Below, in pieces: positions 10,138 to 47,315 of a DNA stretch of 64,000 nt. The notes below the pieces were generated by a model. That model had not been told where the DNA came from and made no database searches. It saw nothing but the letters and a program-made list of their open reading frames with translations. How positions within the stretch are numbered: the first letter of the stretch is position 1; every line of letters starts with the position of its first letter. A program made the translations under genes and the position numbers. The stretch is taken from sequence record MZ475891.1; one strand, 5' to 3'.

Positions 10138-10151
10138 ATGCTGAGGAGCAT
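10138..10151 (+). promoter_or_regulatory. SD-in-tetraloop RBS hairpin
   Basis: ATGCT-GAGG-AGCAT before the ATG at 10156. Confidence 0.6.
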
Positions 10152-10155
10152 AACA

Positions 10156-10497
10156 ATGAACGCATCTACTTTCGATTTCTCTATCATCTGCACCGAGAGC
10201 TTCAACATTAATGAGCTGAACAAAATCGCCGTTGAGCTGAACAAGCTGATCACTAACTCGCAGATCAAAATTGAAGCCGCAGAGATTGACGATGAAGGCA
10301 CCGAGTGTATTCTTCTGGCTGTCGGTCTTGATGAAGACGGCGAAGAGACTGGCGACAACGGCTACTCGCTGCATCTGGACAACGGCGACTATCAGATCGT
10401 ATATCTCGGCGTGCCGCATCCTGACTTCGATAAGCACGAACTTGCGACCAGCGACTTTGAGTTGTTCATCAAATCAGTGAACGGCCTTGAGTTCTAA
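10156..10497 (+). CDS. small acidic hypothetical protein (113 aa)
   Basis: GAGGAG RBS, D/E-rich, first gene after a promoter. Confidence 0.8.
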   Translation: MNASTFDFSIICTESFNINELNKIAVELNKLITNSQIKIEAAEIDDEGTECILLAVGLDEDGEETGDNGYSLHLDNGDYQIVYLGVPHPDFDKHELATSDFELFIKSVNGLEF

Positions 10498-10506
10498 TCA
10501 CTAATC

Positions 10507-10550
10507 TGGCAGAAATCGCCGTTGTGTTTAGACGCTCAACGGCATACTAT
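10507..10550 (+). promoter_or_regulatory. phage promoter, upstream-box class
   Basis: TGGCAGAAAT at 10507; TACTAT at 10545 (38 nt offset); TTGTGT as -35 with a 17-nt spacer. Confidence 0.6.
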
Positions 10551-10599
10551 TATGTCTCTAGCGCAATGACGCGCTACAACAACGAAAGAGAGAAACAAC

Positions 10600-10854
10600 A
10601 TGAGCGAAGACGTTAAAGTAACAATCGATTTAGTAGCTGACTTTGTATCACGCACCGAAGTTGTGTTTGAAGACGGTCAATCATCTAATGACTGGCTCGC
10701 GCCGTATGATCTGCGCCTGAACGTAACTGAGCCTCAAGGGCCGAACGGCTACCCCGAAGTTGAAATCGTCGGCCAGCGCGATAACGTCTTGCGCTTCTTT
10801 GATGAGCAGATGCCTGACAGCGACATTACAGAAGACTCGCTTGAATCTGCATAA
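10600..10854 (+). CDS. small acidic hypothetical protein (84 aa)
   Basis: 20 D/E versus 5 K/R; sits between a promoter and a terminator. Confidence 0.8.
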   Translation: MSEDVKVTIDLVADFVSRTEVVFEDGQSSNDWLAPYDLRLNVTEPQGPNGYPEVEIVGQRDNVLRFFDEQMPDSDITEDSLESA

Positions 10855-10869
10855 GCAACAAACAACACT

Positions 10870-10891
10870 GTGGCGTTACGGCGCCACTTTT
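10870..10891 (+). terminator. intrinsic terminator
   Basis: GTGGCGT-TACG-GCGCCAC followed by TTTT. Confidence 0.75.
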
Positions 10892-10913
10892 CTATTTCTG
10901 ATCTGAGGTCAAT

Positions 10914-11453
10914 ATGAAACAAAAATTCTTATTCTTGCGCATGAGCCGACACGAGCTGAATCAGCATTTGTTTTTACTTCGTGGCATGAGCCGTGAGCGT
11001 CTTGAATCATTTACTGGCATTATCGCCGTTGTCAAAGACGATACGACGATGGCGAACATCGATGATACTGACCTGTATTATTTCAGCGAAGTAACAGCCG
11101 AAGAGACAACATCAGAGACGCAACAAACCTGGTGGAACCTGATTCATTACTACGACAATCAGATTGCTATCGGCTCACTCCCACGTATAGAGCCGCTTCT
11201 GCCTGACGATTTAGTTGAGCGCATCAAAACAACTCGCAGCAATCGCTTCTACTACGAGTTCGATACGCAAATGCCAGAAGTGTTGGCCACTGTTGATCTT
11301 GACCTACACTTCTTACCGTCTGCCGCTCAGCCTCGTGTGAAGAAGCCTAAAGAAGAACAGCCAGAAGTTAATCCCCTGGCCGCATACACAGTCGAACAAC
11401 TGTGTGCCGAACTGCGTACTCGCCTGAGTGCAAAAATCACTATCGAATTTTAA
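10914..11453 (+). CDS. hypothetical protein (179 aa)
   Basis: GAGG RBS; C-terminal LAAYTVEQLCAELRTR helix. Confidence 0.75.
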   Translation: MKQKFLFLRMSRHELNQHLFLLRGMSRERLESFTGIIAVVKDDTTMANIDDTDLYYFSEVTAEETTSETQQTWWNLIHYYDNQIAIGSLPRIEPLLPDDLVERIKTTRSNRFYYEFDTQMPEVLATVDLDLHFLPSAAQPRVKKPKEEQPEVNPLAAYTVEQLCAELRTRLSAKITIEF

Positions 11454-11470
11454 TCAACTAGCACAGGGAC

Positions 11471-12100
11471 GTGCCTCTAACTGAGATCAAAACTATGTTC
11501 ACCAAAGCATTCTTCTTCAAAACTAACTACTCTGTATTGGCCGAAGGTGAGTTCGCTCTGCCTGTTGACTCACTGACCTCTCTTGTCAATTCGCGCATTT
11601 TTATCTGCATCACAGAAGACAACCTGCGCTTCGCACTGACCAACATCACTGTGCAGCCGATTCGCAATGGCTTCTTGCGCGTCGGCTTCGAGCCGAAGAC
11701 TGACGTGAATGCAATCACTACTCCAATCATCACGCCTAAAACTATGTGGAGCGAATATGATTTTGATGCGTGCAGTGTCGAAAACATTCCGTCATTCAAT
11801 ATCAGTACGCATGAAGACAAGAACAACGAACAACTGATTGCGCTGTCTTATGACCTGCGTATGGCTCTCATGCATTATCGTGAAGGCATGTACTGCGTGA
11901 CCGACATCGTTTTGCGTCTGCATGAACACGGCATTTTCGTTGTAGATATTGATCAGAATCTCAAGGTTGCTCTCTCGCCTATCGCCGTGCTTAGCGAACG
12001 ACCTACACATGCGATTAGTCTGAGCAAAGACAACGGTGTGCTGTCTCGCATTGATGACTTCGAACTGCCTGATCTCGCCAAACTGATCGTCCTACTGTAA
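11471..12100 (+). CDS. hypothetical protein
   Basis: long ORF filling the gap; exact start uncertain (GTG at 11471 or a downstream ATG). Confidence 0.7.
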   Translation: MPLTEIKTMFTKAFFFKTNYSVLAEGEFALPVDSLTSLVNSRIFICITEDNLRFALTNITVQPIRNGFLRVGFEPKTDVNAITTPIITPKTMWSEYDFDACSVENIPSFNISTHEDKNNEQLIALSYDLRMALMHYREGMYCVTDIVLRLHEHGIFVVDIDQNLKVALSPIAVLSERPTHAISLSKDNGVLSRIDDFELPDLAKLIVLL

Positions 12101-12112
12101 ACAAACAACTCT

Positions 12113-12136
12113 AGCCTCGCATCGTGCGGGGCTTTC
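12113..12136 (+). terminator. putative terminator
   Basis: AGCCTCGCA-TCG-TGCGGGGCT followed by TTC. Confidence 0.6.
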
Positions 12137-12152
12137 TGCTTTGGAGAACACC

Positions 12153-12413
12153 ATGTATCAATATGACCGCGATGAATTGAATGACCTGCCGCTTGACGTG
12201 CTGCATAGCGAAGCTGAAAAGCGTGGCTTGCTCGCTGACCTGGACGACGATGATGATTGTCCTGACCGTGCAGTGCTGGTGGGCATGATTATTGATGACC
12301 AGAACGAACGCAACGCCGAAGATGAAGAGGAAGGGCAGCGCCGTCAGATGCAAGACGAAGCTGACGATCATCGTCGCATGTTAGACGAACGCGACGGCTC
12401 AGACGACTGCTAA
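12153..12413 (+). CDS. small acidic protein with HeH/Rho-N-like motif (86 aa)
   Basis: GGAG RBS; LNDLPLDVLHSEAEKRGL...DRAVLVGMII. Confidence 0.75.
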   Translation: MYQYDRDELNDLPLDVLHSEAEKRGLLADLDDDDDCPDRAVLVGMIIDDQNERNAEDEEEGQRRQMQDEADDHRRMLDERDGSDDC

Positions 12414-12414
12414 C

Positions 12415-12753
12415 ATGCTATACTCTGGGCAGCAATACGATACACTCAGTCCTGACCAGTTGAATGAGTGTTTCAATCTGATTGAAAGTTGCATGGTGGC
12501 CTCTGGCTGTCGTGGCTTTCAAATAGTGTTATCACCATCTGGTCATGGCGATTGTCGTAGCGTCGTCCACATTCAGCACCCACAGTATGCAGGTCACATT
12601 GAGTTCCCCTCAGTTGACCGTGATACTTTTCGTGTGACTCTCGTCGCAACACGCGGTTGCTATGACAGCCGCACAGTGTTCGTACCAAATTCAGATACAG
12701 CCTATTCAGTGATAGGTCTGTATCTCTCAAACTTTATAGGGGCTACAAAATGA
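12415..12753 (+). CDS. hypothetical protein (112 aa)
   Basis: tight packing with neighbours. Confidence 0.7.
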   Translation: MLYSGQQYDTLSPDQLNECFNLIESCMVASGCRGFQIVLSPSGHGDCRSVVHIQHPQYAGHIEFPSVDRDTFRVTLVATRGCYDSRTVFVPNSDTAYSVIGLYLSNFIGATK

Positions 12754-13094
12754 AACGCCGCGTTATTCGTATCGATCAGTCAGAGTTCAACGGTGAAGCG
12801 CTTGTCTTCCCACCATCATTCAACATCACCGGCATTGACGTTGTGGTGCTTGTGACCGTGACGCACGAAGATTTCGGTGGCTTGAAGTTTCAAGATACCT
12901 ATCGTGTGAACGAACTACGTGTAAGCGAACATACAAATCCCCTGCGTCAGGAGATTGAGATCGTAGAGTACAGCAAACTGCCGAACGATGAAGCAATCTT
13001 CACACGACTACTCGACGTTGATTACTTCGACGACGACATTGCAGAGCGTGACCTGCGTCTGTACGATGCACCGACCACAATCGTCACTGCGTAA
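12750..13094 (+). CDS. hypothetical acidic protein (114 aa)
   Basis: ATGA overlap with the previous gene. Confidence 0.75.
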   Translation: MKRRVIRIDQSEFNGEALVFPPSFNITGIDVVVLVTVTHEDFGGLKFQDTYRVNELRVSEHTNPLRQEIEIVEYSKLPNDEAIFTRLLDVDYFDDDIAERDLRLYDAPTTIVTA

Positions 13095-13177
13095 TAATCT
13101 TTAGGGCTGCCATCTTGGTGGCCCTTTTTGTTTTCTGTAAACTACACGCACAATCCCAACAATGCGAGAACGCACAG

Positions 13178-13552
13178 ATGCCAAAGCGCCGCTTTTATTT
13201 GATGTTCTTTATCAGTCAGGCAGAACTCGACGCCAAGACTTTCTATCAACACAACATGCGCATCCTGACAACGATACGCCGCACACGCTGCATCTTTCTT
13301 GTGGTGCGAGAGACTGGTGAAGTCTATGTCCCAGGCAGCGCCGTGTATCAGTCTGCAATCGAAGAAGATCTAACGCAGATGGTCTTTGATGATCTGCACA
13401 AGGTCACCGAGTCTGTGAATGCCGTTGAGTCATTCGCTCAGGCTATCGCAGTAAACAAAAACGATAAGACAGTTCGCTACTGTGGTCGCAATCCAGAAGT
13501 GAGTGTCGTCTTCTTTGATCGCATGTTCACGAAAGTGGAGGTTCATCTATGA
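13178..13552 (+). CDS. hypothetical protein
   Basis: ORF overlapping the next gene by ATGA; start uncertain. Confidence 0.65.
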   Translation: MPKRRFYLMFFISQAELDAKTFYQHNMRILTTIRRTRCIFLVVRETGEVYVPGSAVYQSAIEEDLTQMVFDDLHKVTESVNAVESFAQAIAVNKNDKTVRYCGRNPEVSVVFFDRMFTKVEVHL

Positions 13553-13824
13553 GTTACGATCCACCAAAGCCAACTACGTCTCTTGGCGCTTCCCTTGCTT
13601 CACGTTGTGCGCACTCCACCCGAGAGAAAGCAAACAAGACGCGCAAGAAATACCCCGCGACAAAGACTGTGGTTGCTACACTGACCGCACCTATGCACGC
13701 CGCTGTGCAACGTCTGGCCAACAAACGCAATGTGTCTATTCAGCGTTGCTTAGTCAACATGCTCGAAACTGAGTTGGCGAAAGAGGGTATCACTTACGCT
13801 AAAGAACAGGACGAAGACGAATGA
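13549..13824 (+). CDS. ribbon-helix-helix-like DNA-binding protein
   Basis: GGAGG RBS; TVVATLTAPMHAAVQRLANKRNVSIQRCLVNML fits a strand-helix-helix pattern. Confidence 0.55.
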   Translation: MSYDPPKPTTSLGASLASRCAHSTREKANKTRKKYPATKTVVATLTAPMHAAVQRLANKRNVSIQRCLVNMLETELAKEGITYAKEQDEDE

Positions 13825-14456
13825 AACGTTTAGGTACAGTCATGGCGTTAGGTCTAAAAGACAAAGCGCCAAAGAATACTGACCTCGACATTACGCCTGT
13901 ATCGAAAGATGAAGAATGGGGCTCTTTGAGTCCCTTTCACTTAGGTCCGTGTCGAAGCGCAGATGGTATTATGTTCTACAACTTCGAAAACCTCTGGCAG
14001 TATAGCAAAGTCTACGAAGAACATTTGGAGAACACAAACCTCATCCTCTCAGGCGAGATAAGCGCTGATTGGTATCAGTGGCATCTTAAAGGTGCAAGAT
14101 CAAAACAGGCGCATCGCTATCCTATGGGAAAAGGCCAGAAGGCTTTATTCTCCAAATGGGGCGACTTGCGCCTTTCGTACATTCCCGCACGTAAACAGAT
14201 TTATGTTCCAGGCTACGCCGAGCTACTTCTGCCTCAAAAGAAATTCAAACAACTCCTCAAGCAATACAAGGCCGGCGCCAACATAATCGTCAGGGACTAC
14301 GACACCTACGATCTGCTGAAAGCCTATCCCAATTCTAATCGCATGTGGCTTGATGCTCTTAACAACCCAAACGCCAAGTTCGGTCACAGTTTCGTGATCG
14401 CTCTTGCTCTCATACTGCACGACAGGCCTCTATGGTACAATCAATGGGTGATATAA
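13821..14456 (+). CDS. NADAR-like protein (putative ADP-ribosyl hydrolase)
   Basis: LSPFHLGP...DGIMFYNFENLWQYSK resembles the NADAR LSNF...dG..f...E..yQ..K motif; also YIPARKQIY and GHSFVI. Confidence 0.5.
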   Translation: MKRLGTVMALGLKDKAPKNTDLDITPVSKDEEWGSLSPFHLGPCRSADGIMFYNFENLWQYSKVYEEHLENTNLILSGEISADWYQWHLKGARSKQAHRYPMGKGQKALFSKWGDLRLSYIPARKQIYVPGYAELLLPQKKFKQLLKQYKAGANIIVRDYDTYDLLKAYPNSNRMWLDALNNPNAKFGHSFVIALALILHDRPLWYNQWVI

Positions 14457-14755
14457 TCTACGAATGGGTCCACGACCTTGGAGGTAACGAAAGTCAGAAT
14501 CTGCCTATCTTGCCTCCAGACATTTATGCGTATGTGCGTGATTCCGTCACTGGCGCACGTACCCCAATCAACTTTGAAGGCCGCACCGAGTTACAGCGTC
14601 AAGACAAGAAAGTCATAGGCGTTGTCTACTGGTCTAATCGAGCTAATCTGATTTCATGGACGGGTGTAGAGCGCTTTCGTTTTACGCTGTATGTATTACG
14701 CGCCGCACGTAAGTCAAATGAACAACACGAGGAAGCTCAAGTCTGCACTAATTAG
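14432..14755 (+). CDS. hypothetical protein
   Basis: fills the gap up to the next promoter; start uncertain. Confidence 0.6.
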   Translation: MVQSMGDIIYEWVHDLGGNESQNLPILPPDIYAYVRDSVTGARTPINFEGRTELQRQDKKVIGVVYWSNRANLISWTGVERFRFTLYVLRAARKSNEQHEEAQVCTN

Positions 14756-14797
14756 GCTGAAATAGTCATCGCGCATAGTACGCTCCTGTGCTATACT
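14754..14797 (+). promoter_or_regulatory. phage promoter, upstream-box class
   Basis: AGGCTGAAAT at 14754; CCTGTGC-TATACT with the -10 at 14792 (38 nt offset). Confidence 0.65.
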
Positions 14798-14825
14798 TAT
14801 AGACGAAGCAACACATAATCTATTC

Positions 14826-14839
14826 ACGCTAAGGAGCGT
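14826..14839 (+). promoter_or_regulatory. SD-in-tetraloop RBS hairpin
   Basis: ACGCT-AAGG-AGCGT before the ATG at 14843. Confidence 0.6.
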
Positions 14840-14842
14840 ACT

Positions 14843-15274
14843 ATGACTATCAACAAGTTTGACTTTCAAACACTGACTACTCCAGAACAATGGTCTTCCG
14901 CTGCTTGGGGTTTCTATCGTGACTTCGCAGATCGTTTACGCGATGTTATCGGCCGCGATGATCTTTTCTTCGACATTGAAGTTGACGGTGGCAGCGATAG
15001 TGACCAAGTTGCCGAAGAGATGGTCGATGATGGTGTGATTCATTTACTCATCTCGTATAAAAACGAAGATGAAGATTTCATTAACGCCAAAGGCGTCTGG
15101 CTGTTCCAAGTCACTTACCCGACAGAAAGTGATATTGACGGTGAGTGGTCTAACCGCTTCGTGGTCGATGTGCAGACCGTTGATATGGAAATTTTAGAGC
15201 TGGTGGATTTTGATAACGGCCATCCACGTTTGCTTGAAGATATTGCAGCGCGTGTTAATCACTGGTTAGTGTAA
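14843..15274 (+). CDS. acidic hypothetical protein (143 aa)
   Basis: AAGGAG RBS, D/E-rich, first gene after a promoter. Confidence 0.8.
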   Translation: MTINKFDFQTLTTPEQWSSAAWGFYRDFADRLRDVIGRDDLFFDIEVDGGSDSDQVAEEMVDDGVIHLLISYKNEDEDFINAKGVWLFQVTYPTESDIDGEWSNRFVVDVQTVDMEILELVDFDNGHPRLLEDIAARVNHWLV

Positions 15275-15322
15275 TTGCTTGCGGGTCTTTTACGAAGGGC
15301 CCGTCGTCAACAACACAAACCC

Positions 15323-15336
15323 GTTCTGAGGAGAAC
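15323..15336 (+). promoter_or_regulatory. SD-in-tetraloop RBS hairpin
   Basis: GTTCT-GAGG-AGAAC before the ATG at 15340. Confidence 0.6.
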
Positions 15337-15339
15337 AAC

Positions 15340-15609
15340 ATGAGTAAATTTTCAGAAGCATCACCTGAAGTACAGAAAGCACTATTGGCGACTGCCATTA
15401 TCTCTGTAATGCCTGATGCATGTAAAGGCATGAGCATGAAAAAGAAGCAGCGCTACGCCGCTTTCGTTTTTGACCAGATTGGGATGACTGAAGAAGATCT
15501 AGGCAACCTAATCGACCAGAGCCTTAACCCTGCTGCTATTGAGGCTGCGGCTATTGTTGATGCCCAAGAAGCTGCTTTGCATACTTCTCAAAATAAATTT
15601 GACGCATAA
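15340..15609 (+). CDS. hypothetical protein (89 aa)
   Basis: GAGGAG RBS. Confidence 0.75.
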   Translation: MSKFSEASPEVQKALLATAIISVMPDACKGMSMKKKQRYAAFVFDQIGMTEEDLGNLIDQSLNPAAIEAAAIVDAQEAALHTSQNKFDA

Positions 15610-15619
15610 GGGGCTTAAC

Positions 15620-15937
15620 ATGTCATCATCTACTGAACTGCAATTCATCTTCCCAGAGTCAACCACTCTTATCGTTACTGTGGGCAACGGCATCGTCCCA
15701 GAGTATATGGGCATCCCTGCTAATCAAGAAACCCAGATGACGGGTGAGACTGCATTCAACTTTATGCAGAACTCTAACATCGTGGGCGTTATGAATCGTT
15801 TTGATCAGTCGCTCCTCAACCTGCTTATTGATCGCCATGAGCAGAACGAAGAAGATGAGAGTGCGCTGCGTCAAGCACACATGCAGAAACACACAAAGAA
15901 CTCTGGTGTGTATCTGATCATCAAACATCACCGCTAA
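15620..15937 (+). CDS. hypothetical protein (105 aa)
   Basis: ATG 10 nt after the previous stop, with AGGGG RBS. Confidence 0.7.
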   Translation: MSSSTELQFIFPESTTLIVTVGNGIVPEYMGIPANQETQMTGETAFNFMQNSNIVGVMNRFDQSLLNLLIDRHEQNEEDESALRQAHMQKHTKNSGVYLIIKHHR

Positions 15938-15983
15938 GATTTGTGAAGGGCATTCGTATGAGTGCTCTTTGAAAATCAACCCT

Positions 15984-15997
15984 GTTCTGAGGAGAAC
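15984..15997 (+). promoter_or_regulatory. SD-in-tetraloop RBS hairpin
   Basis: GTTCT-GAGG-AGAAC before the ATG at 16001; near-duplicate of 15318-15342. Confidence 0.6.
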
Positions 15998-16000
15998 AAT

Positions 16001-16411: not shown

Positions 16412-16425
16412 GCACAAACTACCTC

Positions 16426-16449
16426 AAGCGGCTTACGGGCCGCTTTTCT
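16426..16449 (+). terminator. intrinsic terminator
   Basis: AAGCGGCT-TACG-GGCCGCTT followed by TTCTT. Confidence 0.75.
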
Positions 16450-19184: not shown

Positions 19185-19391
19185 ATGAAAGACATTGTGC
19201 TACACACAGCCCTTTTATTGCCCATGATCGTTGTTAGCTTTTTGACTCTCCATTACATTCGCTTCCTGAGTCTGGGCTACTATATGCTGATCACTATGAC
19301 AGCATTCGTACTGGCCGTGTATGCGTGCAAGCGTCTCGCATCTGCTGTCACTAAAAATCGTTTTAACAAAGTGAGAATCAATCGTGGCTAA
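19185..19391 (+). CDS. small membrane protein (68 aa)
   Basis: two hydrophobic stretches, tight packing. Confidence 0.65.
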   Translation: MKDIVLHTALLLPMIVVSFLTLHYIRFLSLGYYMLITMTAFVLAVYACKRLASAVTKNRFNKVRINRG

Positions 19392-19929
19392 ATCTTTCGG
19401 TGTGTATCTGACGTTCATTCTGCGCCATCGACCGCAAGACATTGGCATTGCAATGGACACCCAAGGCTGGGTATCAGTTCCTGACTTGCTCGAACGTGCT
19501 CAATACAAGAAGCAGCCAATCACGTTAGAGATGTTGCGTGAAGAAGTTGCTACTGACGGTAAAGGCCGCTTCCAGTTTAACGCTGCCCACTCGCGCATTC
19601 GTTGTGTGCAGGGACATTCAGTTGAGCATGTGATTCTTAACCTCAAGCCGTACACGAATCACAATGACCCGCTGTATCACGGAACAGCCAGCAAGAACGT
19701 TGCGTCTATTCTTGCGCAGGGAATTCTTCGCGGTAAGCGTAAACATGTCCACATCGCGACCAACACCGCTACTGCTAAGCAAGTTGGTCAGCGTCACGGT
19801 GAACCTGTTGTGTTTGAGATCGACACGTATGCCATGATTACTCACGGCTATAAGTTCGAACGAGCCGAGAACGGTGTAATTCTTATCGAGCACGTCCCAT
19901 CCCGATATCTAAGGTTGGTAGAGTTATGA
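19384..19929 (+). CDS. kptA: NAD-dependent RNA 2'-phosphotransferase (KptA/Tpt1)
   Basis: ILRH, GWVSV, KGRF, IRCVQGHS, LYHGT, RKHVHIA, VGQRHG, NGVIL. Confidence 0.93.
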   Translation: MAKSFGVYLTFILRHRPQDIGIAMDTQGWVSVPDLLERAQYKKQPITLEMLREEVATDGKGRFQFNAAHSRIRCVQGHSVEHVILNLKPYTNHNDPLYHGTASKNVASILAQGILRGKRKHVHIATNTATAKQVGQRHGEPVVFEIDTYAMITHGYKFERAENGVILIEHVPSRYLRLVEL

Positions 19930-20333
19930 CTGAACAACGAATGAGTTATTGCGGTTCACGTTACATCCGTACATCCTCCGGCAGGTGGTATTTGCTTTTC
20001 GAACGAGCCGCCTGCTTGTGCATCAATCGTCATGGTACCCAGTACTGGCGAGCAGGTACGCAAGTGTGGAAGGATGTGTCTCTCTCAACTCGCGCCACTT
20101 TGGAGAACGAGTTTATCAGTCGTACCCGCAAAGATTTCAGGGAGTCGAAGTCTGCGTACAACAGATGGGGCAAGGTGATTCGTACACTCATTCTAGGTGC
20201 AGGCACTAACGAGCATCTCCACGATTTAGCGTCGATTCTTGAGTCGCTGAGACAGACGCATATAGGACGCAAGCAACAGCAACTGCGCACTACATTGGAT
20301 GAAATAGCTATTCAGTCGAGAACTACCCTGTGA
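19926..20333 (+). CDS. hypothetical protein (135 aa)
   Basis: ATGA overlap with kptA. Confidence 0.65.
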   Translation: MTEQRMSYCGSRYIRTSSGRWYLLFERAACLCINRHGTQYWRAGTQVWKDVSLSTRATLENEFISRTRKDFRESKSAYNRWGKVIRTLILGAGTNEHLHDLASILESLRQTHIGRKQQQLRTTLDEIAIQSRTTL

Positions 20334-20339
20334 TATAAT
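20296..20339 (+). promoter_or_regulatory. phage promoter, upstream-box class
   Basis: TGGATGAAAT at 20296; CCTGTGA-TATAAT with the -10 at 20334 (38 nt offset). Confidence 0.75.
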
Positions 20340-20390
20340 AGCAGCGAACGCTAAACAGTCTCGTTTAGCTACTTACATGAGGATATGTAT

Positions 20391-20492
20391 ATGATTAACA
20401 ACTACTGCCCGTTTCGCGCTGTGATGTACCACGCTTCAATCATCCTTCTCGCCATTTGCTCTGGCGTTGTTTTAGCCCACGCACATTTCTGA
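20391..20492 (+). CDS. 33-aa hydrophobic peptide (below the ORF-track cutoff)
   Basis: GAGGA RBS; MINNYCPFRAVMYHASIILLAICSGVVLAHAHF; its stop overlaps the RBS hairpin of the rSAM gene. Confidence 0.5.
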   Translation: MINNYCPFRAVMYHASIILLAICSGVVLAHAHF

Positions 20493-20498
20493 GGAGAA
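20487..20498 (+). promoter_or_regulatory. SD-in-tetraloop RBS hairpin (4 bp)
   Basis: TTCT-GAGG-AGAA before the ATG at 20506. Confidence 0.45.
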
Positions 20499-20505
20499 TA
20501 TTAAT

Positions 20506-21645
20506 ATGATGCGTAACTTCACGGCAATCCTGCCAGTAACCTGTAATGCCGATTGTTCATTCTGCCCTGAGAAAGAAATGGAGCAGAAAGCTACGAACCG
20601 CCAGTGGCTGACTAACCTCATCTCGCAGATTAATGATCATGCTGGTGAGTTCGACCACGTTTCAATCTCTGGCGGTGAGCCTACGCTCAAGCCAAAGTTC
20701 CTGTTTGAAGTGATCGATGCGATTCGCAATCAAACGGATATCGATAAAGTTGGACTCACGTCTAACGGTCGCTTCCTGAATAAGCAAGACAGCATTTTTC
20801 AGTTTCTTGATCTGAACACAGACGACATGCTGGAAAGCAAGCTGTCCCATCTGAATATCAGCCGTCATTCATTCGATGATGCCAAGAACAACGAGATCAT
20901 GAAAGTGCGTTACACGTACACGCTCGATGATCTTGTGAAGTTTAGACGTCAACTCGGCACGAAGCTGAGCTTCCACATTAACTTCGTTATCAACGAGCAC
21001 AACATCGATAACATTGAGTGGGAGTTTGCACAGGCTAATCGATTCATGATGGAGAATCCGTGGATCGATGTAGTGTTCCGCGTTGACTATGCAAACGAAA
21101 AGCTGAATCGTCGTCTGCGTCGTTACGGCCTGTCTGTGCAAGCGTGGCGTGATGCAACTCGCGGCTCTATTCGTGATGAACGCATAGCGCGTGAGAAGCT
21201 GAAAAAGAAACCCAAACTCGTTCAGTTGTTTGATGGAGTGTTTAGCGGTACAACACAGGACAATGACGGTACATTTACCGATGCGTGTCCAAGCTGTTTC
21301 GTACATCGCAGCCAGAAGATTCATAACAACCACGCGTGGCTAAAAGCGTCCTCGTACGAACCGAACGTAGACGAAGAGGAATACACTGAGTATGTGTTCC
21401 ACATGGACGGCGAACTTTACTACGACTGGTCGCGTGCTGAGCCTGTGCCTGCCGTAGAGAAGAAGCCGCGCAAACACAAAGCCATTCGCATTATCCAGAG
21501 AGAAGTGGAAGAAGATGATATGGATGAAGACATGCCTGCATCTTCTCGTATGGGTTGTCAGTATAGAACTGTCGGATGTTCTTACGGTGAATCAGAATCT
21601 GCTGGTGGCTGTTCATTTAGATCTCCTGGCAGCTGTAGCTTTTAA
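20506..21645 (+). CDS. radical SAM protein with Cys-repeat C-terminal tail
   Basis: CNADCSFC (CxxxCxxC), ISGGEPTL, LTSNG, LNISRH; tail GCQY/GCSY/GCSF/SCSF. Confidence 0.9.
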   Translation: MMRNFTAILPVTCNADCSFCPEKEMEQKATNRQWLTNLISQINDHAGEFDHVSISGGEPTLKPKFLFEVIDAIRNQTDIDKVGLTSNGRFLNKQDSIFQFLDLNTDDMLESKLSHLNISRHSFDDAKNNEIMKVRYTYTLDDLVKFRRQLGTKLSFHINFVINEHNIDNIEWEFAQANRFMMENPWIDVVFRVDYANEKLNRRLRRYGLSVQAWRDATRGSIRDERIAREKLKKKPKLVQLFDGVFSGTTQDNDGTFTDACPSCFVHRSQKIHNNHAWLKASSYEPNVDEEEYTEYVFHMDGELYYDWSRAEPVPAVEKKPRKHKAIRIIQREVEEDDMDEDMPASSRMGCQYRTVGCSYGESESAGGCSFRSPGSCSF

Positions 21646-28166: not shown

Positions 28167-28682
28167 ATGAAATACGCTTCAATCGTTCTTGCTACTCTGC
28201 TTGCCACTTCTTTCGCTGCGTCTGCCGCTAACTACAAAGCACCAGCGCCTGTTAAGGGTATGCAGTCTAGCGGTATGCACATCGATGATCAACTGGACGA
28301 TAGCTGCCAGACCAAACTGTCTCAAGCCATCGACTTGCGCGACTCTGTTGTTGACTTCACTGTTAGTCGCAATCAGATTGATACTGTGGCCGCTTGGCCG
28401 CTTGTGTGTTCCCCAACAGTCGAAGCAAAGACTGTTAGTGTTGAGCGTATGGGTTCTGACCTGACGATCACTTACGTTAACAACGACGACACCCTGCACC
28501 CGCTGACTCTGACCTTGCAGCGTGTTGAATCTGAATCCGAAGATGACGCACCTGCGTATCAGATCGTCCAAGTAGGCGACATGAGCGCAATGGGTTATCA
28601 GGAGCAGGCTGACGTTAAAGACTGGCTGCTGGACTGTTACGCTGCTACGTTGCAGACTGGCATTCCACTGAGCATGAACTAA
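28167..28682 (+). CDS. exported/periplasmic protein with Sec signal peptide (171 aa)
   Basis: MKYASIVLATLLATSFAASA-A signal peptide; GAGG RBS. Confidence 0.75.
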   Translation: MKYASIVLATLLATSFAASAANYKAPAPVKGMQSSGMHIDDQLDDSCQTKLSQAIDLRDSVVDFTVSRNQIDTVAAWPLVCSPTVEAKTVSVERMGSDLTITYVNNDDTLHPLTLTLQRVESESEDDAPAYQIVQVGDMSAMGYQEQADVKDWLLDCYAATLQTGIPLSMN

Positions 28683-28960
28683 TGCAGCACCGTCGTAAAG
28701 TAAAGGCCGAGTCAAAGCAACGTTCAATACCCGAAGACTGGCCTGTATTCAAAGACATGTTGCTGACGTTGCGCATCGCTGTACTCACGGACGAGAAGCC
28801 TCACGCTAAACTGCGTGCGCTTGCTCTCCAATGGTATACAGATGGGAAGTATCGTAACCCTGTCTGTGATTCTGTTCTGCTTAGGTTGACCGCTGAGAAA
28901 CGACCTAAGCAAACTCTTGATCAATTGATCACTCTCTATAACTTTCTTGAGGAAGAATAA
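28682..28960 (+). CDS. hypothetical protein (92 aa)
   Basis: TAATG coupling. Confidence 0.7.
   Translation: MQHRRKVKAESKQRSIPEDWPVFKDMLLTLRIAVLTDEKPHAKLRALALQWYTDGKYRNPVCDSVLLRLTAEKRPKQTLDQLITLYNFLEEE
28944..28957 (+). promoter_or_regulatory. SD-in-tetraloop RBS hairpin
   Basis: TTCTT-GAGG-AAGAA before the ATG at 28963. Confidence 0.55.
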
Positions 28961-30184: not shown

Positions 30185-30228
30185 TGGACAAAACAGCGCT
30201 TCTTAACGAGGCGCTTTTCTGCTATAAT
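30185..30228 (+). promoter_or_regulatory. phage promoter, upstream-box class, overlapping a terminator-like hairpin
   Basis: TGGACAAAAC at 30185; TGC-TATAAT with the -10 at 30223 (38 nt offset); AGCGCTTC...GAGGCGCT+TTT in the spacer. Confidence 0.75.
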
Positions 30229-35652: not shown

Positions 35653-35696
35653 TGGACGAAATAAGGCTACTCTGCTTAGGCTGCTTATGCTATAAT
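35653..35696 (+). promoter_or_regulatory. phage promoter, upstream-box class
   Basis: TGGACGAAAT at 35653; CTTATGC-TATAAT with the -10 at 35691 (38 nt offset). Confidence 0.75.
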
Positions 35697-39695: not shown

Positions 39696-39739
39696 TGGAC
39701 AAAATAGAGGTAGCTAGAAAAAGCTGCCCCTGATATACT
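39696..39739 (+). promoter_or_regulatory. phage promoter, upstream-box class
   Basis: TGGACAAAAT at 39696; TGA-TATACT with the -10 at 39734 (38 nt offset). Confidence 0.8.
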
Positions 39740-39773: not shown

Positions 39774-39787
39774 TGTCTGAGGAGACA
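39774..39787 (+). promoter_or_regulatory. SD-in-tetraloop RBS hairpin
   Basis: TGTCT-GAGG-AGACA before the ATG at 39793. Confidence 0.6.
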
Positions 39788-40881: not shown

Positions 40882-40884
40882 ATC

Positions 40885-40928
40885 TGGACAAAATCGTGGT
40901 TGTAGCAAAAACCGTCCTATGTTATAAT
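40885..40928 (+). promoter_or_regulatory. phage promoter, upstream-box class
   Basis: TGGACAAAAT at 40885; CCTATGT-TATAAT with the -10 at 40923 (38 nt offset). Confidence 0.8.
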
Positions 40929-40985
40929 AGAGATGTAGCGTAGACGTGAGGTATGCGCTATAAATTGAATGACGCGTTTTTGCTT

Positions 40986-41078
40986 GACTGTAAGGTAGCG
41001 GTATCTTACAGTCCTTTTTCAAGTGGCTTCGAAGTTTGAGGCTTCTTGCGAAAGGGTTCGATACCCTTTAAGCGCTTT
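40986..41078 (+). ncRNA. structured leader RNA (copy 1) with a tRNA T-loop-like hairpin
   Basis: 12-bp hairpin GACTGTAAGGTA/TATCTTACAGTC, then CTTTTT, a AAGTG...CGCTT stem and AAAGGG-TTCGATA-CCCTTT. Confidence 0.4.
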
Positions 41079-41136
41079 CGGATTTACGCGGTTTTCACCG
41101 ACTGTGCTTTCATATTAAATCGCAAAGGAAATTGTT

Positions 41137-41958: not shown

Positions 41959-41967
41959 GCACAAATA

Positions 41968-42012
41968 TGGACAAAATAGTGGTAGTATCTAAAGCATGAC
42001 CTGTGCTACACT
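41968..42012 (+). promoter_or_regulatory. phage promoter, upstream-box class
   Basis: TGGACAAAAT at 41968; CCTGTGC-TACACT with the -10 at 42007 (39 nt offset). Confidence 0.75.
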
Positions 42013-42015
42013 ATA

Positions 42016-42135
42016 GATCGAATGCCTTGTAGTTTTTTGACTGTGAGTTACTTTCCGGCTCACAGTCCTTTTTAAAGTGCTCTCACAAGAACGCTTTAAA
42101 AAGCACAGACTGCCTGCGCTTTTGATAGACAGCAT
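42016..42135 (+). ncRNA. putative ~120-nt small RNA (copy 2 of the structured element)
   Basis: ORF-free interval between two promoters; hairpins GACTGTGAG/CTCACAGTC (42039-42067) and CTTTTTAAAGTG/CGCTTTAAAAAG (42068-42103). Confidence 0.45.
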
Positions 42136-42140
42136 AAATC

Positions 42141-42184
42141 TGGACAAAATCATGGTTGTATCAGAATGCTGCCTGTCATACACT
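42141..42184 (+). promoter_or_regulatory. phage promoter, upstream-box class
   Basis: TGGACAAAAT at 42141; CCTGTCA-TACACT with the -10 at 42179 (38 nt offset); TTGTAT as -35. Confidence 0.75.
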
Positions 42185-42226
42185 TTAATGAGTCGAGCAA
42201 TAGTGCTCGCAACAAACTAAATCCCA

Positions 42227-42240
42227 ATACTGAGGAGTAT
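42227..42240 (+). promoter_or_regulatory. SD-in-tetraloop RBS hairpin
   Basis: ATACT-GAGG-AGTAT before the ATG at 42246. Confidence 0.6.
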
Positions 42241-42245
42241 TACAC

Positions 42246-43838
<1,593 letters not shown>

Positions 43839-43860
43839 GTAACCTGTAGTTCTGAATACA

Positions 43861-43880
43861 TGCGGCTCGAAAGGGCCGCA
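43861..43880 (+). terminator. GC hairpin with GAAA tetraloop
   Basis: TGCGGCTC-GAAA-GGGCCGCA, no U-tract. Confidence 0.5.
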
Positions 43881-43895
43881 CACTGACAACAAAGT

Positions 43896-43909
43896 TGATT
43901 GAGGAATCA
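43896..43909 (+). promoter_or_regulatory. SD-in-tetraloop RBS hairpin
   Basis: TGATT-GAGG-AATCA before the ATG at 43914. Confidence 0.55.
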
Positions 43910-43913
43910 CATT

Positions 43914-45176
43914 ATGTCAAACGCAAATAAAACTCTGCTTAACGCTCGTGTACGTCTGTCCACTGGCACAACTACTTTCATCAACAAGATTAACGCGAAC
44001 GGCTACGGCATCGATGCTAAGGGCCCACAGATTTCTGTGAAGCGTCTTGTTATTGCAGGCAAAATGCTCAAAGAGCTGGCTGAGCCGCTGCCGCAAGGTG
44101 AATACGTTGTGCTGAACGGCGTCACTGTGAAACTGAACAAGCGCCAGCAACGTGAGCTTGCAGAGAAAACGCTCGACACTAAAGCGCTGCTGCCTGATTT
44201 AAGCAAGCTGACCTACGTTGACCCGCAGACAGGCAAAGTCACTGATTCAAAAGTGAAGGCGCCTAAAGCTGGCGCGAAAGCAAGTCTGAAAGCAACGCGT
44301 GAGCACAACAAAGAGCCGAAGCGTAGTCGCAAACAGCACAAAGCTGAAACGAACGATCTCAAAGACAGTCTGGACATTATCGACGAACGCAAATCACCGA
44401 AAGCGTCTCTGATTGAACGTCTGGATGCAGCAATCGCCGAAGCGAAAACGAAAGCACGCCGTAAGCTGTTAGCCGAAACGTTCGACATGGACTGGGCTGA
44501 TATTAAAAAGCATGGCGGTGCAGGTATCGTTAAGCAGCATGGCCGCAAGAACGCCCAGAAGTTTATTGATCGTCAGACAGTGCAGGTCGATAGCACAACG
44601 TTCATCAAACAAATGCCAGCGCCGCTCAAGCGTCTTATTCAGGACACTGAGTTGCGTCTCAATCAAAAGCAGATTGAGCAAGTGCTTGGTGCGCTGGGGC
44701 TTGATACGCAATTCTACGCAGTCGCCGTGCAAGAGCTGCTGGGCAAACTCAAACTGTCCATAGGCGGCCGCGTGATCGAAGGCGAAGTTGTTCGAAAGGA
44801 GAACACGCCGAAGCCAAAAAGGTTCGTACACGCTGAGGCGCAATACGCAGATAAGAAAGAAGCGAAACGCCGCGTAAGCAAAATGAAATACGCGCTGCTG
44901 ATTCCGCCTACGAAAGGTCTGCCTGCGTTACGCATTCATCAGGCAGAGGCAAAGCAGTCACTCGCCGTTATGCTGCACCTGAAGCCTGGGAACATCAAGC
45001 GTGGTCTGCTTGCGTATGACAACAAAGGCCGTGAGTATATGTATGTCGCTTGCGATATGACGGGCCCTGTGTTCATCGATAAAGATAGCAACGAGCTGGC
45101 GTTCACGTATGCCAATCTGATCGATAACTTCAAACTCAAAGCGCAGCCTGTGTCTGAACTGGACGTGGCCGTATGA
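43914..45176 (+). CDS. Lys-rich protein, apparent paralog of the 42246 gene (420 aa)
   Basis: similar N-terminal beta domain and similar L.pG....Y...G....D domain. Confidence 0.8.
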   Translation: MSNANKTLLNARVRLSTGTTTFINKINANGYGIDAKGPQISVKRLVIAGKMLKELAEPLPQGEYVVLNGVTVKLNKRQQRELAEKTLDTKALLPDLSKLTYVDPQTGKVTDSKVKAPKAGAKASLKATREHNKEPKRSRKQHKAETNDLKDSLDIIDERKSPKASLIERLDAAIAEAKTKARRKLLAETFDMDWADIKKHGGAGIVKQHGRKNAQKFIDRQTVQVDSTTFIKQMPAPLKRLIQDTELRLNQKQIEQVLGALGLDTQFYAVAVQELLGKLKLSIGGRVIEGEVVRKENTPKPKRFVHAEAQYADKKEAKRRVSKMKYALLIPPTKGLPALRIHQAEAKQSLAVMLHLKPGNIKRGLLAYDNKGREYMYVACDMTGPVFIDKDSNELAFTYANLIDNFKLKAQPVSELDVAV

Positions 45177-45559
45177 GAACTGAAATCATCGTAGCGGGAG
45201 TTCTCTCTCAACTTTACACGCGGCTGATTACGGCCGCTATAATGAAAGCGCATGTGTATTACTCAGACCTTGCGCCGGTGGTGTTCGGTGTGCAGCTTAC
45301 CAAAGTCGGTAAGTCGCAGTATCAAGCGCTGTGGGATTTAGTAGCGCTGACGATGCAGATGGACCACGCACACGGCCGACCGCCTGTTGCTGCTCTGTAT
45401 GTGTCTCGCGCTAATGCATCAAAACGACCGCCGCAAGCATTCTTCGCTGAATACGAGCGGCTAACTGGTAAGCGACTCAATGACGACGACTGGGAAGAGT
45501 TAGTCGATGAAGTATGGGCAGCTTACTCTCCACCAGAAATCTGTCAGGAGCCGACATGA
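45173..45559 (+). CDS. hypothetical protein, possible winged-helix domain (128 aa)
   Basis: ATGA overlap; GRPPVAALYVSR...P.QAFF. Confidence 0.7.
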   Translation: MRTEIIVAGVLSQLYTRLITAAIMKAHVYYSDLAPVVFGVQLTKVGKSQYQALWDLVALTMQMDHAHGRPPVAALYVSRANASKRPPQAFFAEYERLTGKRLNDDDWEELVDEVWAAYSPPEICQEPT

Positions 45560-46014
45560 AGAAGTTGAAAGCCGTAAAGGTTAAAATTAGCCGCGGTGGT
45601 TATAAGCCTTCTTCTAAGGAAGAGGCAAAGAAGCTGGTGGCAGAGTTTCTGCTCGGTACCATCGGCATTAGCCCAACGCAAGTCAGTCAACAACTGCTGT
45701 TGAATATCACGAACTACAACTATCTGACCTCTGTTGCGTATTCTGGACGTTCTACAGATTACAGCCAAGCGGCAGCGCACAAAACTGTAAAAGAACTAAA
45801 TGAATTTTGTCGAAAGCATAAAATTCAACTGGGCTTGCTAATTATGCCCCACACGTCGGCGTCTGAATATGATGGTGACGTAATTGTTGCAATCCCGTGG
45901 GAGCATGTTAAGAACAATCCGCAAATCCAGTCTGCCGTTAATTCTCTGTTTGAATCGGTTGAAGCAGACGGCTACCCACAGTATGTGACTGATGCTAAAA
46001 CAGTAGAGGGATAA
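45556..46014 (+). CDS. hypothetical protein (152 aa)
   Basis: AGGAG RBS, ATGA overlap. Confidence 0.75.
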   Translation: MKKLKAVKVKISRGGYKPSSKEEAKKLVAEFLLGTIGISPTQVSQQLLLNITNYNYLTSVAYSGRSTDYSQAAAHKTVKELNEFCRKHKIQLGLLIMPHTSASEYDGDVIVAIPWEHVKNNPQIQSAVNSLFESVEADGYPQYVTDAKTVEG

Positions 46015-46015
46015 G

Positions 46016-47296
46016 ATGTTCTACGACTATGTATTCAACTTCGACGAGCGCCAGACGCTACTGTCGTTAGCGGAATCCAAGTATCTTCTTAAACGGGACA
46101 TTCCCGAGTATCTTAAAAAGTCCAAACACGCAATTGAGATTCGTCACACTGTGACCAATCGTGGACGCGAGCGCCGCTCAGGAACAATAACAACTCCTAT
46201 CGTGCCGCGTATTCACACCCGTGATGTTATGCGCTTGCTTGATGATATTCGTGACAACGCGACTTACAGCTCCTGCCAAAGTCTCGCTGAACTGTTTGAA
46301 TTGGGCTTGGGCGTTCCGCGCCAGAAAGATATTGCTACTTACCTTCATGCTTATTCGCGTGAGCACGACAAGAAAGGTATCGGTATCAAGTATATCCGCA
46401 AGCTGGTGGTTGATTATCATCGTAAGCACCGTCGTAGTATGGCGGGCAGTCGCTGGTTAATGCCTGCTGCTTACACGGCCAATCTGCTGAACATGCAGAA
46501 CTTCATTCATCTGAAAGAAGACGGCTACAAGGGTAAAGTCAAAACGCCAGACGGCATCCCTGTAGTCTTGATTTACCAGAGCACTGAATACGCGACTGGC
46601 GAGTTTACTCTGTGTGACGCATTCATGATTAGTCCGATGGGATATCCAATGCCGTTCGCTCAGATTGCGCTGCGTCCCGAGTTCAAGGCTGTGCCTAAAA
46701 CGTTTTGCTCCCAAGCTCTGCGTGGCAAAGGCATGTACTCAATGGTTCTCGGTATGATTTACTGGGAGAAAGGTGATTCAGTCGAATTGACACGCGAAGT
46801 CATGGAGATTGATGACAACCAGTATCTCACGTTGCTCGATGATGAACGTTATGCTGACCGCCGCTCTGATGAATATTCAGCGATGCTGGTCAAGCGTGAA
46901 GAGTTCCGTCGCAATCGTGACAAGTGGCAGTCAGTGATTGATAAGTACGGCCAGACAGTTCGAACCCTCAAGCCTGAGATTAGCGCTCGTCTTGATCGTG
47001 CTCGTCAGTTCTTCTACGACCGCTCCGAGTTCCTGAAAGAGTTCGAGTCTCAGGAGAAGCGTGAGAACACCCGCGCATCAAAACGTTTTGCTGTAGCGTC
47101 TGCGATGTTTGCTGCGATTGACTGTGGGACAATTGCTGATCGTCAGACCTACCTTGCAGTGAGCACAAAGATTGATAAAGTGCATGACATTCTCGGTAAG
47201 TGGGGATTCAACACTGTAAAATCTGTTAATGCTAGTTTGAAGAAGTCTCTTTTAACCTATGACGAATCAGGCGTATCTCGCGTCTGGTCACTATAA
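46016..47296 (+). CDS. hypothetical protein (426 aa)
   Basis: long ORF, tight packing. Confidence 0.8.
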   Translation: MFYDYVFNFDERQTLLSLAESKYLLKRDIPEYLKKSKHAIEIRHTVTNRGRERRSGTITTPIVPRIHTRDVMRLLDDIRDNATYSSCQSLAELFELGLGVPRQKDIATYLHAYSREHDKKGIGIKYIRKLVVDYHRKHRRSMAGSRWLMPAAYTANLLNMQNFIHLKEDGYKGKVKTPDGIPVVLIYQSTEYATGEFTLCDAFMISPMGYPMPFAQIALRPEFKAVPKTFCSQALRGKGMYSMVLGMIYWEKGDSVELTREVMEIDDNQYLTLLDDERYADRRSDEYSAMLVKREEFRRNRDKWQSVIDKYGQTVRTLKPEISARLDRARQFFYDRSEFLKEFESQEKRENTRASKRFAVASAMFAAIDCGTIADRQTYLAVSTKIDKVHDILGKWGFNTVKSVNASLKKSLLTYDESGVSRVWSL

Positions 47297-47299
47297 CCC

Positions 47300-47315
47300 T
47301 TATCTGAGGAGATAA
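47300..47315 (+). promoter_or_regulatory. SD-in-tetraloop RBS hairpin (6 bp)
   Basis: TTATCT-GAGG-AGATAA before the ATG at 47318. Confidence 0.6.

Follow-up and report, generated by a model that had tools for sequence, protein, structure and literature searches.

Hairpins with the Shine-Dalgarno core in a tetraloop mark one gene block of Erwinia phage pEa_SNUABM_13 and its relatives

Eleven genes in the final 64 kb of Erwinia phage pEa_SNUABM_13 (pEa13; record MZ475891.1, positions 200715-264714, assigned by sequence identity) are preceded by a short hairpin that carries the core of the Shine-Dalgarno (SD) sequence, RAGG, in its tetraloop. This 64-kb stretch is called the window below, positions are those of the window unless the record is named, and genes are named by the first position of their start codon. 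pEa13 is a jumbo myovirus of 264.7 kb on Erwinia amylovora, in which all protein-coding genes except two bear the label 'hypothetical protein'. The hairpins are real, far above chance, specific in strand, geometry and genome region, and under selection with compensatory changes across genera. Structured ribosome-binding sites (RBSs) are known mostly as single cases that hide the SD, whereas here one precise and durable design, in which everything is paired except the SD core, extends across a gene class in at least five genera.

Occurrence and specificity of the hairpins in pEa13

An exhaustive scan of the window for perfect stems of at least 4 bp around (G/A)AGG returned eleven hairpins, every one of them on the + strand, and all eleven end 2-7 nt 5' of an annotated ATG (Table 1); the - strand yielded none. 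A preliminary description of this DNA, made from the sequence alone, had listed the same eleven, and its list proved complete; only the stems at 15983-15998 (TGTTCT/AGAACA) and 42226-42241 (AATACT/AGTATT) are each one pair longer than it gave. A plain shuffle is the wrong null for such a count, because SD motifs cluster at gene starts with compositionally biased flanks. The 5' flanks were therefore exchanged among the 52 annotated window starts that have (G/A)AGG 4-12 nt upstream, which keeps the SD and the positional composition. Under this null 0.62 +/- 0.77 stems of at least 4 bp are expected (maximum 5), and none of 20,000 permutations reached the eleven observed, a frequency that upholds the preliminary description. 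Stem lengths among the 52 RBSs are bimodal, with 0-3 bp at 41 and 4-6 bp at 11.

That the hairpins are chance palindromes or a DNA-level signal, be it an inverted repeat, a promoter element or a terminator, is scarcely credible. Short, AT-rich sequences whose inner CT/AG pairs are in part a consequence of the SD consensus could suggest chance; yet the flank swap predicts 0.6 copies against 11, the opposite strand has none, and in every copy the sense-strand SD forms the loop and stands at SD spacing. The half-sites moreover differ between copies with pairing kept, orthologs show compensatory changes, and a GC-rich stem and a U-run are missing. Intrinsic terminators were rejected, as the stems are A/U-rich, 4-6 bp long and followed by an A/C-rich spacer and an ATG, and none was called in the terminator scan. 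At gathering score there is no Rfam match in the whole window.

The hairpins follow one exact, all-or-none design in one gene block, and the phage-wide signal of the preliminary description has to be given up. Over 342 of the 343 annotated starts of the genome, the block (record 210-249 kb, + strand, which is window 10-48 kb) has 11 tetraloop copies where 0.63 are expected, the remaining + strand genes have none where 0.60 are, and the - strand has two where 0.85 are; the module thus stands at 11 of the 72 block genes, and the other 270 genes are at chance. A census that ignores the loop sequence (perfect hairpins of at least 5 bp in -32 to -1) gave 11 tetraloop genes against 1.3 in the block, all but one with a RAGG loop, and nothing unusual elsewhere. 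A general tendency to keep the SD accessible in any loop was ruled out, with 5-8-nt loops at chance everywhere (15 against 17), and so was a graded pairing tendency, with copies that have a G.U pair or one mismatch at chance. Among genes with a leader of at least 40 nt, 8 of 24 in the block carry the module, against 0 of 74 elsewhere.

The only two RBS-linked SD tetraloops outside the block lie on the - strand, TCTTTT.AAGG.AAAAGA (record 148954-148969) and AAGT.AAGG.ACTT (148127-148140), in front of two late-strand genes (starts at record 148951 and 148125) that are separated by a single other gene. The two are near each other, yet their number is within the chance expectation of 0.85.

Conservation and exchange of the module among related phages

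The relatives of pEa13 belong to Alexandravirus, Sasquatchvirus (Y3), Yoloswagvirus and Rivsvirus; Yersinia phage fHe-Yen9-02 and the Dickeya Salmondvirus phages are more distant ones. The homologous block was taken from GenBank phage records for 13 further genomes of at least five genera, which together with the pEa13 window makes 405 kb from 14 genomes. An IMG/VR scan with the 530-aa protein of gene 42246, in which low-complexity patterns served as the query, found no relatives.

Across this set, 91 hairpins, each on the coding strand, stand within 10 nt of the start codon of a downstream open reading frame (ORF) with 40 codons or more; away from RBSs there are 6 copies on the coding strand, and 8 copies lie on the opposite strand. 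The loop is GAGG in 80 copies and AAGG in 11, the closing pair is U-A in 72, C-G in 9, G-C in 9 and A-U in 1, and the second pair is C-G in 69. Stems have 5 bp in 51 copies and 6 bp in 24, the spacer is mostly 2-5 nt and the start is ATG at 88 of the 91. G makes up just 4% of the 10 nt upstream of the hairpin and 7% of the spacer, against 24% of the genome.

The preliminary description had taken the differing stems of the eleven hairpins as compensatory variation. Among the eleven themselves this is not evidence, because the sites were chosen for pairing, and the case for covariation rests on the flank-swap test and on orthologous comparisons. Orthologous starts were mapped by tblastn of the downstream protein only, so that the sites were not chosen for pairing, and here the claim stands. 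A hairpin of at least 4 bp is retained at 48 of the 52 protein-mapped sites with a NAGG core; compared pair by pair with pEa13, 221 cells are unchanged, 25 are double changes that still pair, 3 are single changes that still pair and 11 are broken, the last concentrated in a few sites that lost the module. In RNAalifold alignments of start-anchored leaders the SD hairpin is recovered de novo, with pair types AU/UA and UA/AU/CG/UG; it is the sole conserved structure in one alignment and is joined in the other by a 3-bp helix of an upstream stem-loop.

Individual sites illustrate the pattern. The hairpin of gene 39793 is kept in 10 of 10 relatives examined, and its fifth pair is U-A, A-U (Y3), C-G (pEa5) or U.G (Yoloswag). 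Orthologs of site 14826 read ACGCT.GAGG.AGCGT, and pEa17 has AAGCT/AGCTT, in which the fourth pair has gone from C-G to A-U; at site 15323 the Alexandra ortholog, TAAGCT.AAGG.AGCTTA, has three pairs exchanged. The TAAGCT/AGCTTA of other phages is shortened by a deletion on each arm to TAGCT/AGCTA in Yoloswag. The most deeply conserved copy is 42226, where the module is identical in four genera and the adjacent upstream sequence is scrambled; the ortholog of gene 42246 in fHe-Yen9-02 (43% protein identity) has TAATTCT.GAGG.AGAATTA, and that in Dickeya JA29 (33-36%) has ATTTCT.TAGG.AGAAAT. Site 47300 retains TATCT/AGATA in four genera, and at several sites the inner four pairs are identical in four genera amid scrambled neighbouring sequence. 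Overall, the design persists in genes whose proteins are just 28-63% identical.

The module has also been gained and lost among relatives. Site 43896 is identical in Alexandravirus and Sasquatchvirus and absent in Yoloswag, pEa5 and fHe-Yen9-02; site 28944 reads CCTT.GAGG.AAGG in pEa17 and pEa18 and is missing from Alexandra and pEa35. The Alexandra ortholog of gene 16001 has lost its 5' arm, and gene 15620 of pEa13 is a further loss. A gain is seen at 20487, which is specific to the pEa13 lineage: relatives have a longer unbroken ORF and no start there, and in pEa13 the radical-SAM gene (20391-21645) is split into a 33-codon ORF and a 379-codon ORF, the hairpin standing at the new start that arose from the split.

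Two side observations belong to these loci. Before gene 15620 a decayed module is visible at 15594-15619 (cgcat.AAGG.GGCTTAAC-ATG), in which the 3' arm and spacer remain and the 5' arm is gone; the ortholog in six other genomes has the cassette TAAGCT.GAGG.AGCTTA-AC-ATG. The radical-SAM gene is annotated in phage Y3 as GTP 3',8-cyclase MoaA.

Stems are drawn from a small repertoire (TAAGCT, (T)GTTCT, ATGCT, ACGCT, TGCC and others) and are swapped wholesale. The related genes of site 10138 in Alexandra-type phages have TGCC.RAGG.GGCA; orthologs of site 15983 have TAAGCT/AGCTTA in pEa35, pEa17 and pEa18 and ATGCT/AGCAT in Y3; and the same protein N-terminus stands behind TAAGCT in pEa17 and TGTTCT in pEa18. 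One stem is often common to neighbouring genes of a genome. This wholesale exchange points to recombination of short cassettes.

Initiation, candidate readers and known systems

The link to translation holds. The preliminary description had suggested a signal for translational control or mRNA turnover that a protein reads; strand-specific, selected and lying exactly on the SD, the hairpins do point to initiation or to mRNA fate at the RBS, but Pfam identified no reader among 338 of 342 proteins. The hairpin sites show the anti-SD complementarity, 5-10 nt from the start, that defines an SD. Loop and top stem pairs together are predicted to form 6-7 bp with the tail of the 16S rRNA at 10 of the 11 sites, the 3' end of the loop lying 8-11 nt and the end of AGGAG 6-9 nt before the ATG. 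With predicted energies of -1.5 to -6.3 kcal/mol at 28 C the hairpins are weak; at 9 of the 11 sites the hairpin is present in the minimum-free-energy fold of its context. In 100-nt contexts the predicted probability that the four SD core bases are unpaired is 0.76 for genes with a hairpin, against 0.35 for the rest (p = 5e-5). The mean energy of the SD:anti-SD duplex is -8.5 kcal/mol against -6.5 kcal/mol in other genes (p = 2e-4), the start codon is more open and the local folding energy is unusually uniform (standard deviation 1.5 against 3.0). When the leaders are cofolded with the 16S tail, an SD duplex of 6-7 bp displaces the hairpin at a net -3.4 to -8.3 kcal/mol. An RNA thermometer of the ROSE or fourU type was ruled out, the SD core being in the loop and predicted to be mostly unpaired (0.76).

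The model we prefer, to which we give a little less than an even chance, is a standardised, cis-acting initiation module for one gene class that would insulate and might favour initiation kinetically. One stem can stand in for another from gene to gene and from genome to genome, and every conserved base is explained by 16S pairing or by the stem; as all conserved features can be so explained, a cis module is at least as likely as a signal that is read. Such a module would consist of a G-poor, A/C-rich tract, a 5-6-bp stem with the SD core as RAGG tetraloop, a G-poor spacer of 2-5 nt and the ATG, and the top two stem pairs (usually C-U / A-G) would hold the remainder of a long, 6-7-nt SD. The local helix would keep the G-rich SD core exposed in the loop and away from pairing elsewhere. 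The 3' tail of the 16S rRNA would dock on the loop and then pair onward with the upper stem; the 3-4 weak pairs left below would come apart, and spacer and start codon would be freed by strand displacement. Initiation would thereby gain in speed and in independence of sequence context, not in thermodynamic strength. Formation of the hairpin in vivo, early timing and a positive effect in cis are what we infer here.

Several points weigh against such a module. Net binding of the 16S tail is no better than at ordinary genes (-3.4 against about -4.3 kcal/mol, not significant), which rules out a thermodynamically stronger RBS; what sets the module apart is its architecture, with an exposed core between locked flanks, and its uniformity, and any benefit has to be kinetic or a matter of insulation. 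Since the leaders have few G and little structure to begin with, it is not obvious why a hairpin should be needed to expose the SD. A general efficiency device would also be expected where late genes are highly expressed and in the long leaders of 74 other genes, yet the module is missing from both, and a class-specific regulator fits the restriction to one gene class equally well. Judging from the aligned sites, conservation of the inner pairs exceeds the needs of pairing alone. The early class to which the module would belong is assigned from promoter consensus alone, and about three quarters of the phage proteins are without a recognisable domain, so that a reader protein is possible.

A new class-specific regulator is a serious rival, for which the restriction to one class and the conserved stem identities are the best arguments. 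The hairpins would in that case be the operators of a regulon, and a phage RNA-binding protein or endoribonuclease would read the RAGG tetraloop on its short stem and repress or cleave the mRNAs of this class at a set time, as RegA and RegB of phage T4 do with early messages; we regard this as possible, if on the unlikely side. One fixed geometry, all-or-none membership and a single promoter-linked block would suit operators, as would a constant loop on a variable stem, known from classical protein-binding operators, and stem identities that are conserved beyond pairing needs; and hairpins too weak to block ribosomes alone would do so if clamped by a protein. On the other hand, SD or stem function accounts for all conserved nucleotides, the closing pairs vary (72 U-A, 9 C-G and 9 G-C of 91), GGAG is missing from 22 of the 91 copies, and Pfam found neither an RNA-binding regulator nor a RegB or RegA family. 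That search covered 338 of 342 proteins at E <= 0.001 and returned no RegB, RegA, CsrA, Hfq/LSM, KH or S1 family; what it finds are replication, repair and nucleotide enzymes, Tpt1, Ish1 (HeH-type), ASCH and structural proteins. The phage HeH or Sm-like reader named in the preliminary description has accordingly little to stand on, with no Hfq/LSM family and, as the HeH type, one weak Ish1 domain. A narrower version of the operator model, to be held with a little more doubt, has the SD tetraloops as operators of a new post-transcriptional regulon of jumbo phages, read by a phage protein without a recognisable RNA-binding domain. Such a putative reader would switch the host-takeover gene class off (or on) at the RBS, as a structure-specific counterpart of RegA and RegB.

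Cleavage by a nuclease of the type of T4 RegB, a precedent named in the preliminary description, does not agree with the sites. RegB cleaves GG*AG in early translation-initiation regions of T4, and its targets are single-stranded 11-mers, GGAGRAYARAA, that structure protects (PMC3014915, PMC1702504). The phage messages here are alike in being (probably) early and in having a GGAG-type SD that may serve as a common shut-off handle; they are unlike in that the sequence 3' of GG is paired, and Pfam detected no RegB or RegA homolog in 338 of 342 proteins. Moreover, GGAG (or GGAU) is present in only 9 of the 11 hairpins of the window and 69 of the 91 in the family. A remote or novel RegB analogue is conceivable despite the Pfam result.

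The protection of T4 GGAG sites from RegB by secondary structure (PMC3014915) suggests a further role, in which the hairpin mainly shields the SD region of the mRNA from an endonuclease (host RNase E, or a phage or host-defence nuclease directed at the SD) or stabilises a processed 5' end. In its favour, the hairpins are translation-neutral in equilibrium terms, and a 5' leader hairpin or a terminator-like stem-loop stands shortly before several of them. It is nonetheless improbable: the would-be target, the loop, remains exposed, five weak base pairs give little shielding, the A/C-rich single-stranded leader is still open and no nuclease candidate was found.

The other reader put forward in the preliminary description was host CsrA. 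CsrA binds GGA in the loops of short hairpins that often overlap the SD, its sites being defined by a GGA that is always found in the loop and by the consensus RUACARGGAUGU (PMC2896534), and GGA is present in 81 of the 91 copies, including all 11 in the window. CsrA and RsmA targets thus share with the phage sites a short hairpin at the RBS with part of a purine-rich SD in the loop (PMC2896534). They differ in register, the phage loop being RAGG and not RGGA, shifted by one base, so that of GGA only the GG lies in the predicted loop and the A sits in the closing pair. The consensus is matched at 4-7 of 12 positions, 10 of the 91 copies (the TGCC.AAGG.GGCA type) lack GGA altogether, and the genes here are phage genes of one block; a second GGA site in the leaders was not noticed, though no systematic search was made. 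That the hairpins are host CsrA/RsmA sites which repress or time phage messages is very improbable.

The nearest genomic analogue of the SD modules is the PeSL cassette of T4-like phages, in which a terminator stem-loop, an early promoter of the sigma-70 type, an SD and a start are repeated between ORFan genes (PMC4122927, PMC2839356). These composite cassettes lie beside small ORFans where the genome is plastic, and recombination shuffles them; here promoter, leader and SD module are repeated, and stems are swapped among neighbouring genes and close relatives. The difference is that the PeSL stem-loop is a terminator 5' of the promoter (PMC4122927), whereas the phage hairpin encloses the SD itself.

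The literature searched holds nothing on these hairpins or on RBS structure in Alexandra-, Sasquatch-, Yoloswagvirus or PaBG-type phages, and describes an SD within a hairpin loop almost only for CsrA targets. As a feature of these genomes the hairpins are well established, and in kind they are a variant among structured initiation regions and operators. Hairpins bound by the coat proteins of MS2 and PP7 are short, adjacent to the RBS and built from a constant loop on variable stem pairs. The translational operator of T4 gene 43 (gp43) is likewise a hairpin by the RBS (PMC3014915). The phage hairpins resemble these operators in being short, at or next to the RBS and constant in the loop with a variable stem. 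They differ in that MS2 and gp43 have single autoregulatory sites, which involve, instead of an SD in the loop, the start codon in MS2 and a site 5' of the RBS in gp43, and in having more than ten copies per genome and no known binding protein. In toehold switches and in loop-nucleated antisense pairing, the RBS is unpaired in a loop with its flanks paired, and opening proceeds by strand displacement from an exposed segment. Unlike a toehold switch, the natural stem is far shorter (4-7 bp), the start codon lies outside it and the putative displacing strand is the 16S tail. Stems that close with CU...AG recall lambdoid boxB, which has a GNRA-like pentaloop and goes with an adjacent boxA and an N-type protein; this identity was rejected because the loop has 4 nt (RAGG) and ends in G, not A, and boxA and N were not searched for.

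If the module acts in cis, it would offer a natural and portable RBS part that insulates from context, and a case in which loop-nucleated docking of the 30S subunit can be tested. If a protein reads it, it would mark a new regulon of host-takeover genes in little-understood jumbo phages that are used against fire blight. Either way, it is a simple sequence marker of one gene class in genomes whose genes are nearly all labelled 'hypothetical'.

Promoters, leaders and other features of the block

Apart from one radical-SAM protein, PHROGs and Pfam place the products of the hairpin genes, mostly ORFans, in families without known function, and no PDB relative of the 530-aa protein was found. The genes are linked to a promoter-like class with nine copies, on the + strand only and in record 210-260 kb only, which has a box CTGGACAAAATAG at about -50 to -39 and an extended -10 (TGnTATAAT). 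The full layout is GCAcTAA..cTGGACAAAATAG at about -60 to -39, some 23 nt and the extended -10; there is no -35 hexamer, and the box is in a position like that of an UP element. Canonical -35/-10 promoters were rejected as the relevant class, being not enriched (15 against about 22 expected). As the preliminary description had noted for several hairpins, the class lies directly 5' of hairpin genes 10156, 14843, 35739 and 39793, while a single small ORF separates a further copy from 20506; the remaining hairpin genes sit further along the same presumed transcription units. By the consensus of these promoters, the hairpin genes are probably an early class transcribed by host polymerase. A related phage group has been reported to have its own sigma factor (PMC7412058), which fits, without proving, that promoters of the host-sigma type would be early.

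Table 1. Hairpins and promoter-like elements of the window (stem.loop.stem; all stems perfect)
Feature	Position	Strand	Remarks
Extended -10 (TGCTATAAT)	10101-10109	+	Upstream-box class; putative promoter by consensus
Leader hairpin GAGC-GCATT-GCTC	10116-10128	+	Predicted, 5'-proximal; between promoter and SD hairpin; GAGC..GCTC equivalent in leaders of relatives
SD hairpin ATGCT.GAGG.AGCAT	10138-10151	+	4 nt 5' of ATG 10156 (113-aa ORFan); first gene behind promoter 10101
Extended -10	14789-14797	+	Upstream-box class
SD hairpin ACGCT.AAGG.AGCGT	14826-14839	+	3 nt 5' of ATG 14843; first gene behind promoter 14789
SD hairpin GTTCT.GAGG.AGAAC	15323-15336	+	3 nt 5' of ATG 15340
SD hairpin TGTTCT.GAGG.AGAACA	15983-15998	+	6 bp; 2 nt 5' of ATG 16001
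Extended -10	20331-20339	+	Upstream-box class
Doubtful variant TACAT.GAGGAT.ATGTA	20374-20389	+	6-nt loop; ahead of 33-aa ORF; loop class at chance level
SD hairpin TTCT.GAGG.AGAA	20487-20498	+	4 bp, weakest; 7 nt 5' of ATG 20506 (radical-SAM protein)
SD hairpin TTCTT.GAGG.AAGAA	28944-28957	+	5 nt 5' of ATG 28963; overlaps final codons of upstream gene 28682-28960
Extended -10	30220-30228	+	Upstream-box class
Extended -10	35688-35696	+	Upstream-box class
SD hairpin TTCTC.AAGG.GAGAA	35721-35734	+	Closing pair C-G; 4 nt 5' of ATG 35739; first gene behind promoter 35688
Extended -10	39731-39739	+	Upstream-box class
SD hairpin TGTCT.GAGG.AGACA	39774-39787	+	5 nt 5' of ATG 39793; 3' of promoter 39731 and U-run stem-loop 39740-39765
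Extended -10	40920-40928	+	Upstream-box class
Leader hairpin CGAGCA-ATAG-TGCTCG	42194-42209	+	5' of the 42226 module; conserved ATAG loop
SD hairpin AATACT.GAGG.AGTATT	42226-42241	+	6 bp; 4 nt 5' of ATG 42246 (530-aa conserved acidic protein)
SD hairpin TGATT.GAGG.AATCA	43896-43909	+	4 nt 5' of ATG 43914
SD hairpin TTATCT.GAGG.AGATAA	47300-47315	+	6 bp; 2 nt 5' of ATG 47318 (1001-aa protein); 4 nt past upstream stop codon
Extended -10	54907-54915	+	Upstream-box class
Extended -10	59483-59491	+	Upstream-box class

Some leaders have a 5' hairpin between promoter and module; the one at 42194 has a stem that covaries between genomes, with GACGCA-ATAG-TGCGTC in Alexandra-type phages. Some modules are directly preceded by (C)ATAACCC or AAACCC, as at 15313-15322, 15973-15982, 42216-42225 and 47290-47299 and in many relatives; these motifs may be part of the G-free leader or a separate signal.

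Two strong terminator-like hairpins that resemble each other lie at 40986-41013 (GACTGTAAGG...) and 42039-42067 (GACTGTGAG...), each followed by CTTTTT, and between 9 and 48.5 kb sites of the terminator-like kind are about twice as common as in shuffled sequence. The former coincides with the 5' part of a 95-nt 'tRNA-Glu(ttc)' called by ARAGORN at 40981-41075 with the anticodon at position 38; the call, which is below the Rfam tRNA gathering score, is doubtful. The block also encodes an RNA 2'-phosphotransferase (Tpt1/KptA, E = 4e-44; window 2515-27410, probably 19384-19929 by synteny with Y3_272), and 2'-5' RNA ligase / Acb1-like and ASCH domains occur elsewhere in the genome. The functions of the Tpt1, Acb1-like and ASCH proteins are in RNA repair or anti-defence and are possibly of relevance to conflicts at the RNA level.

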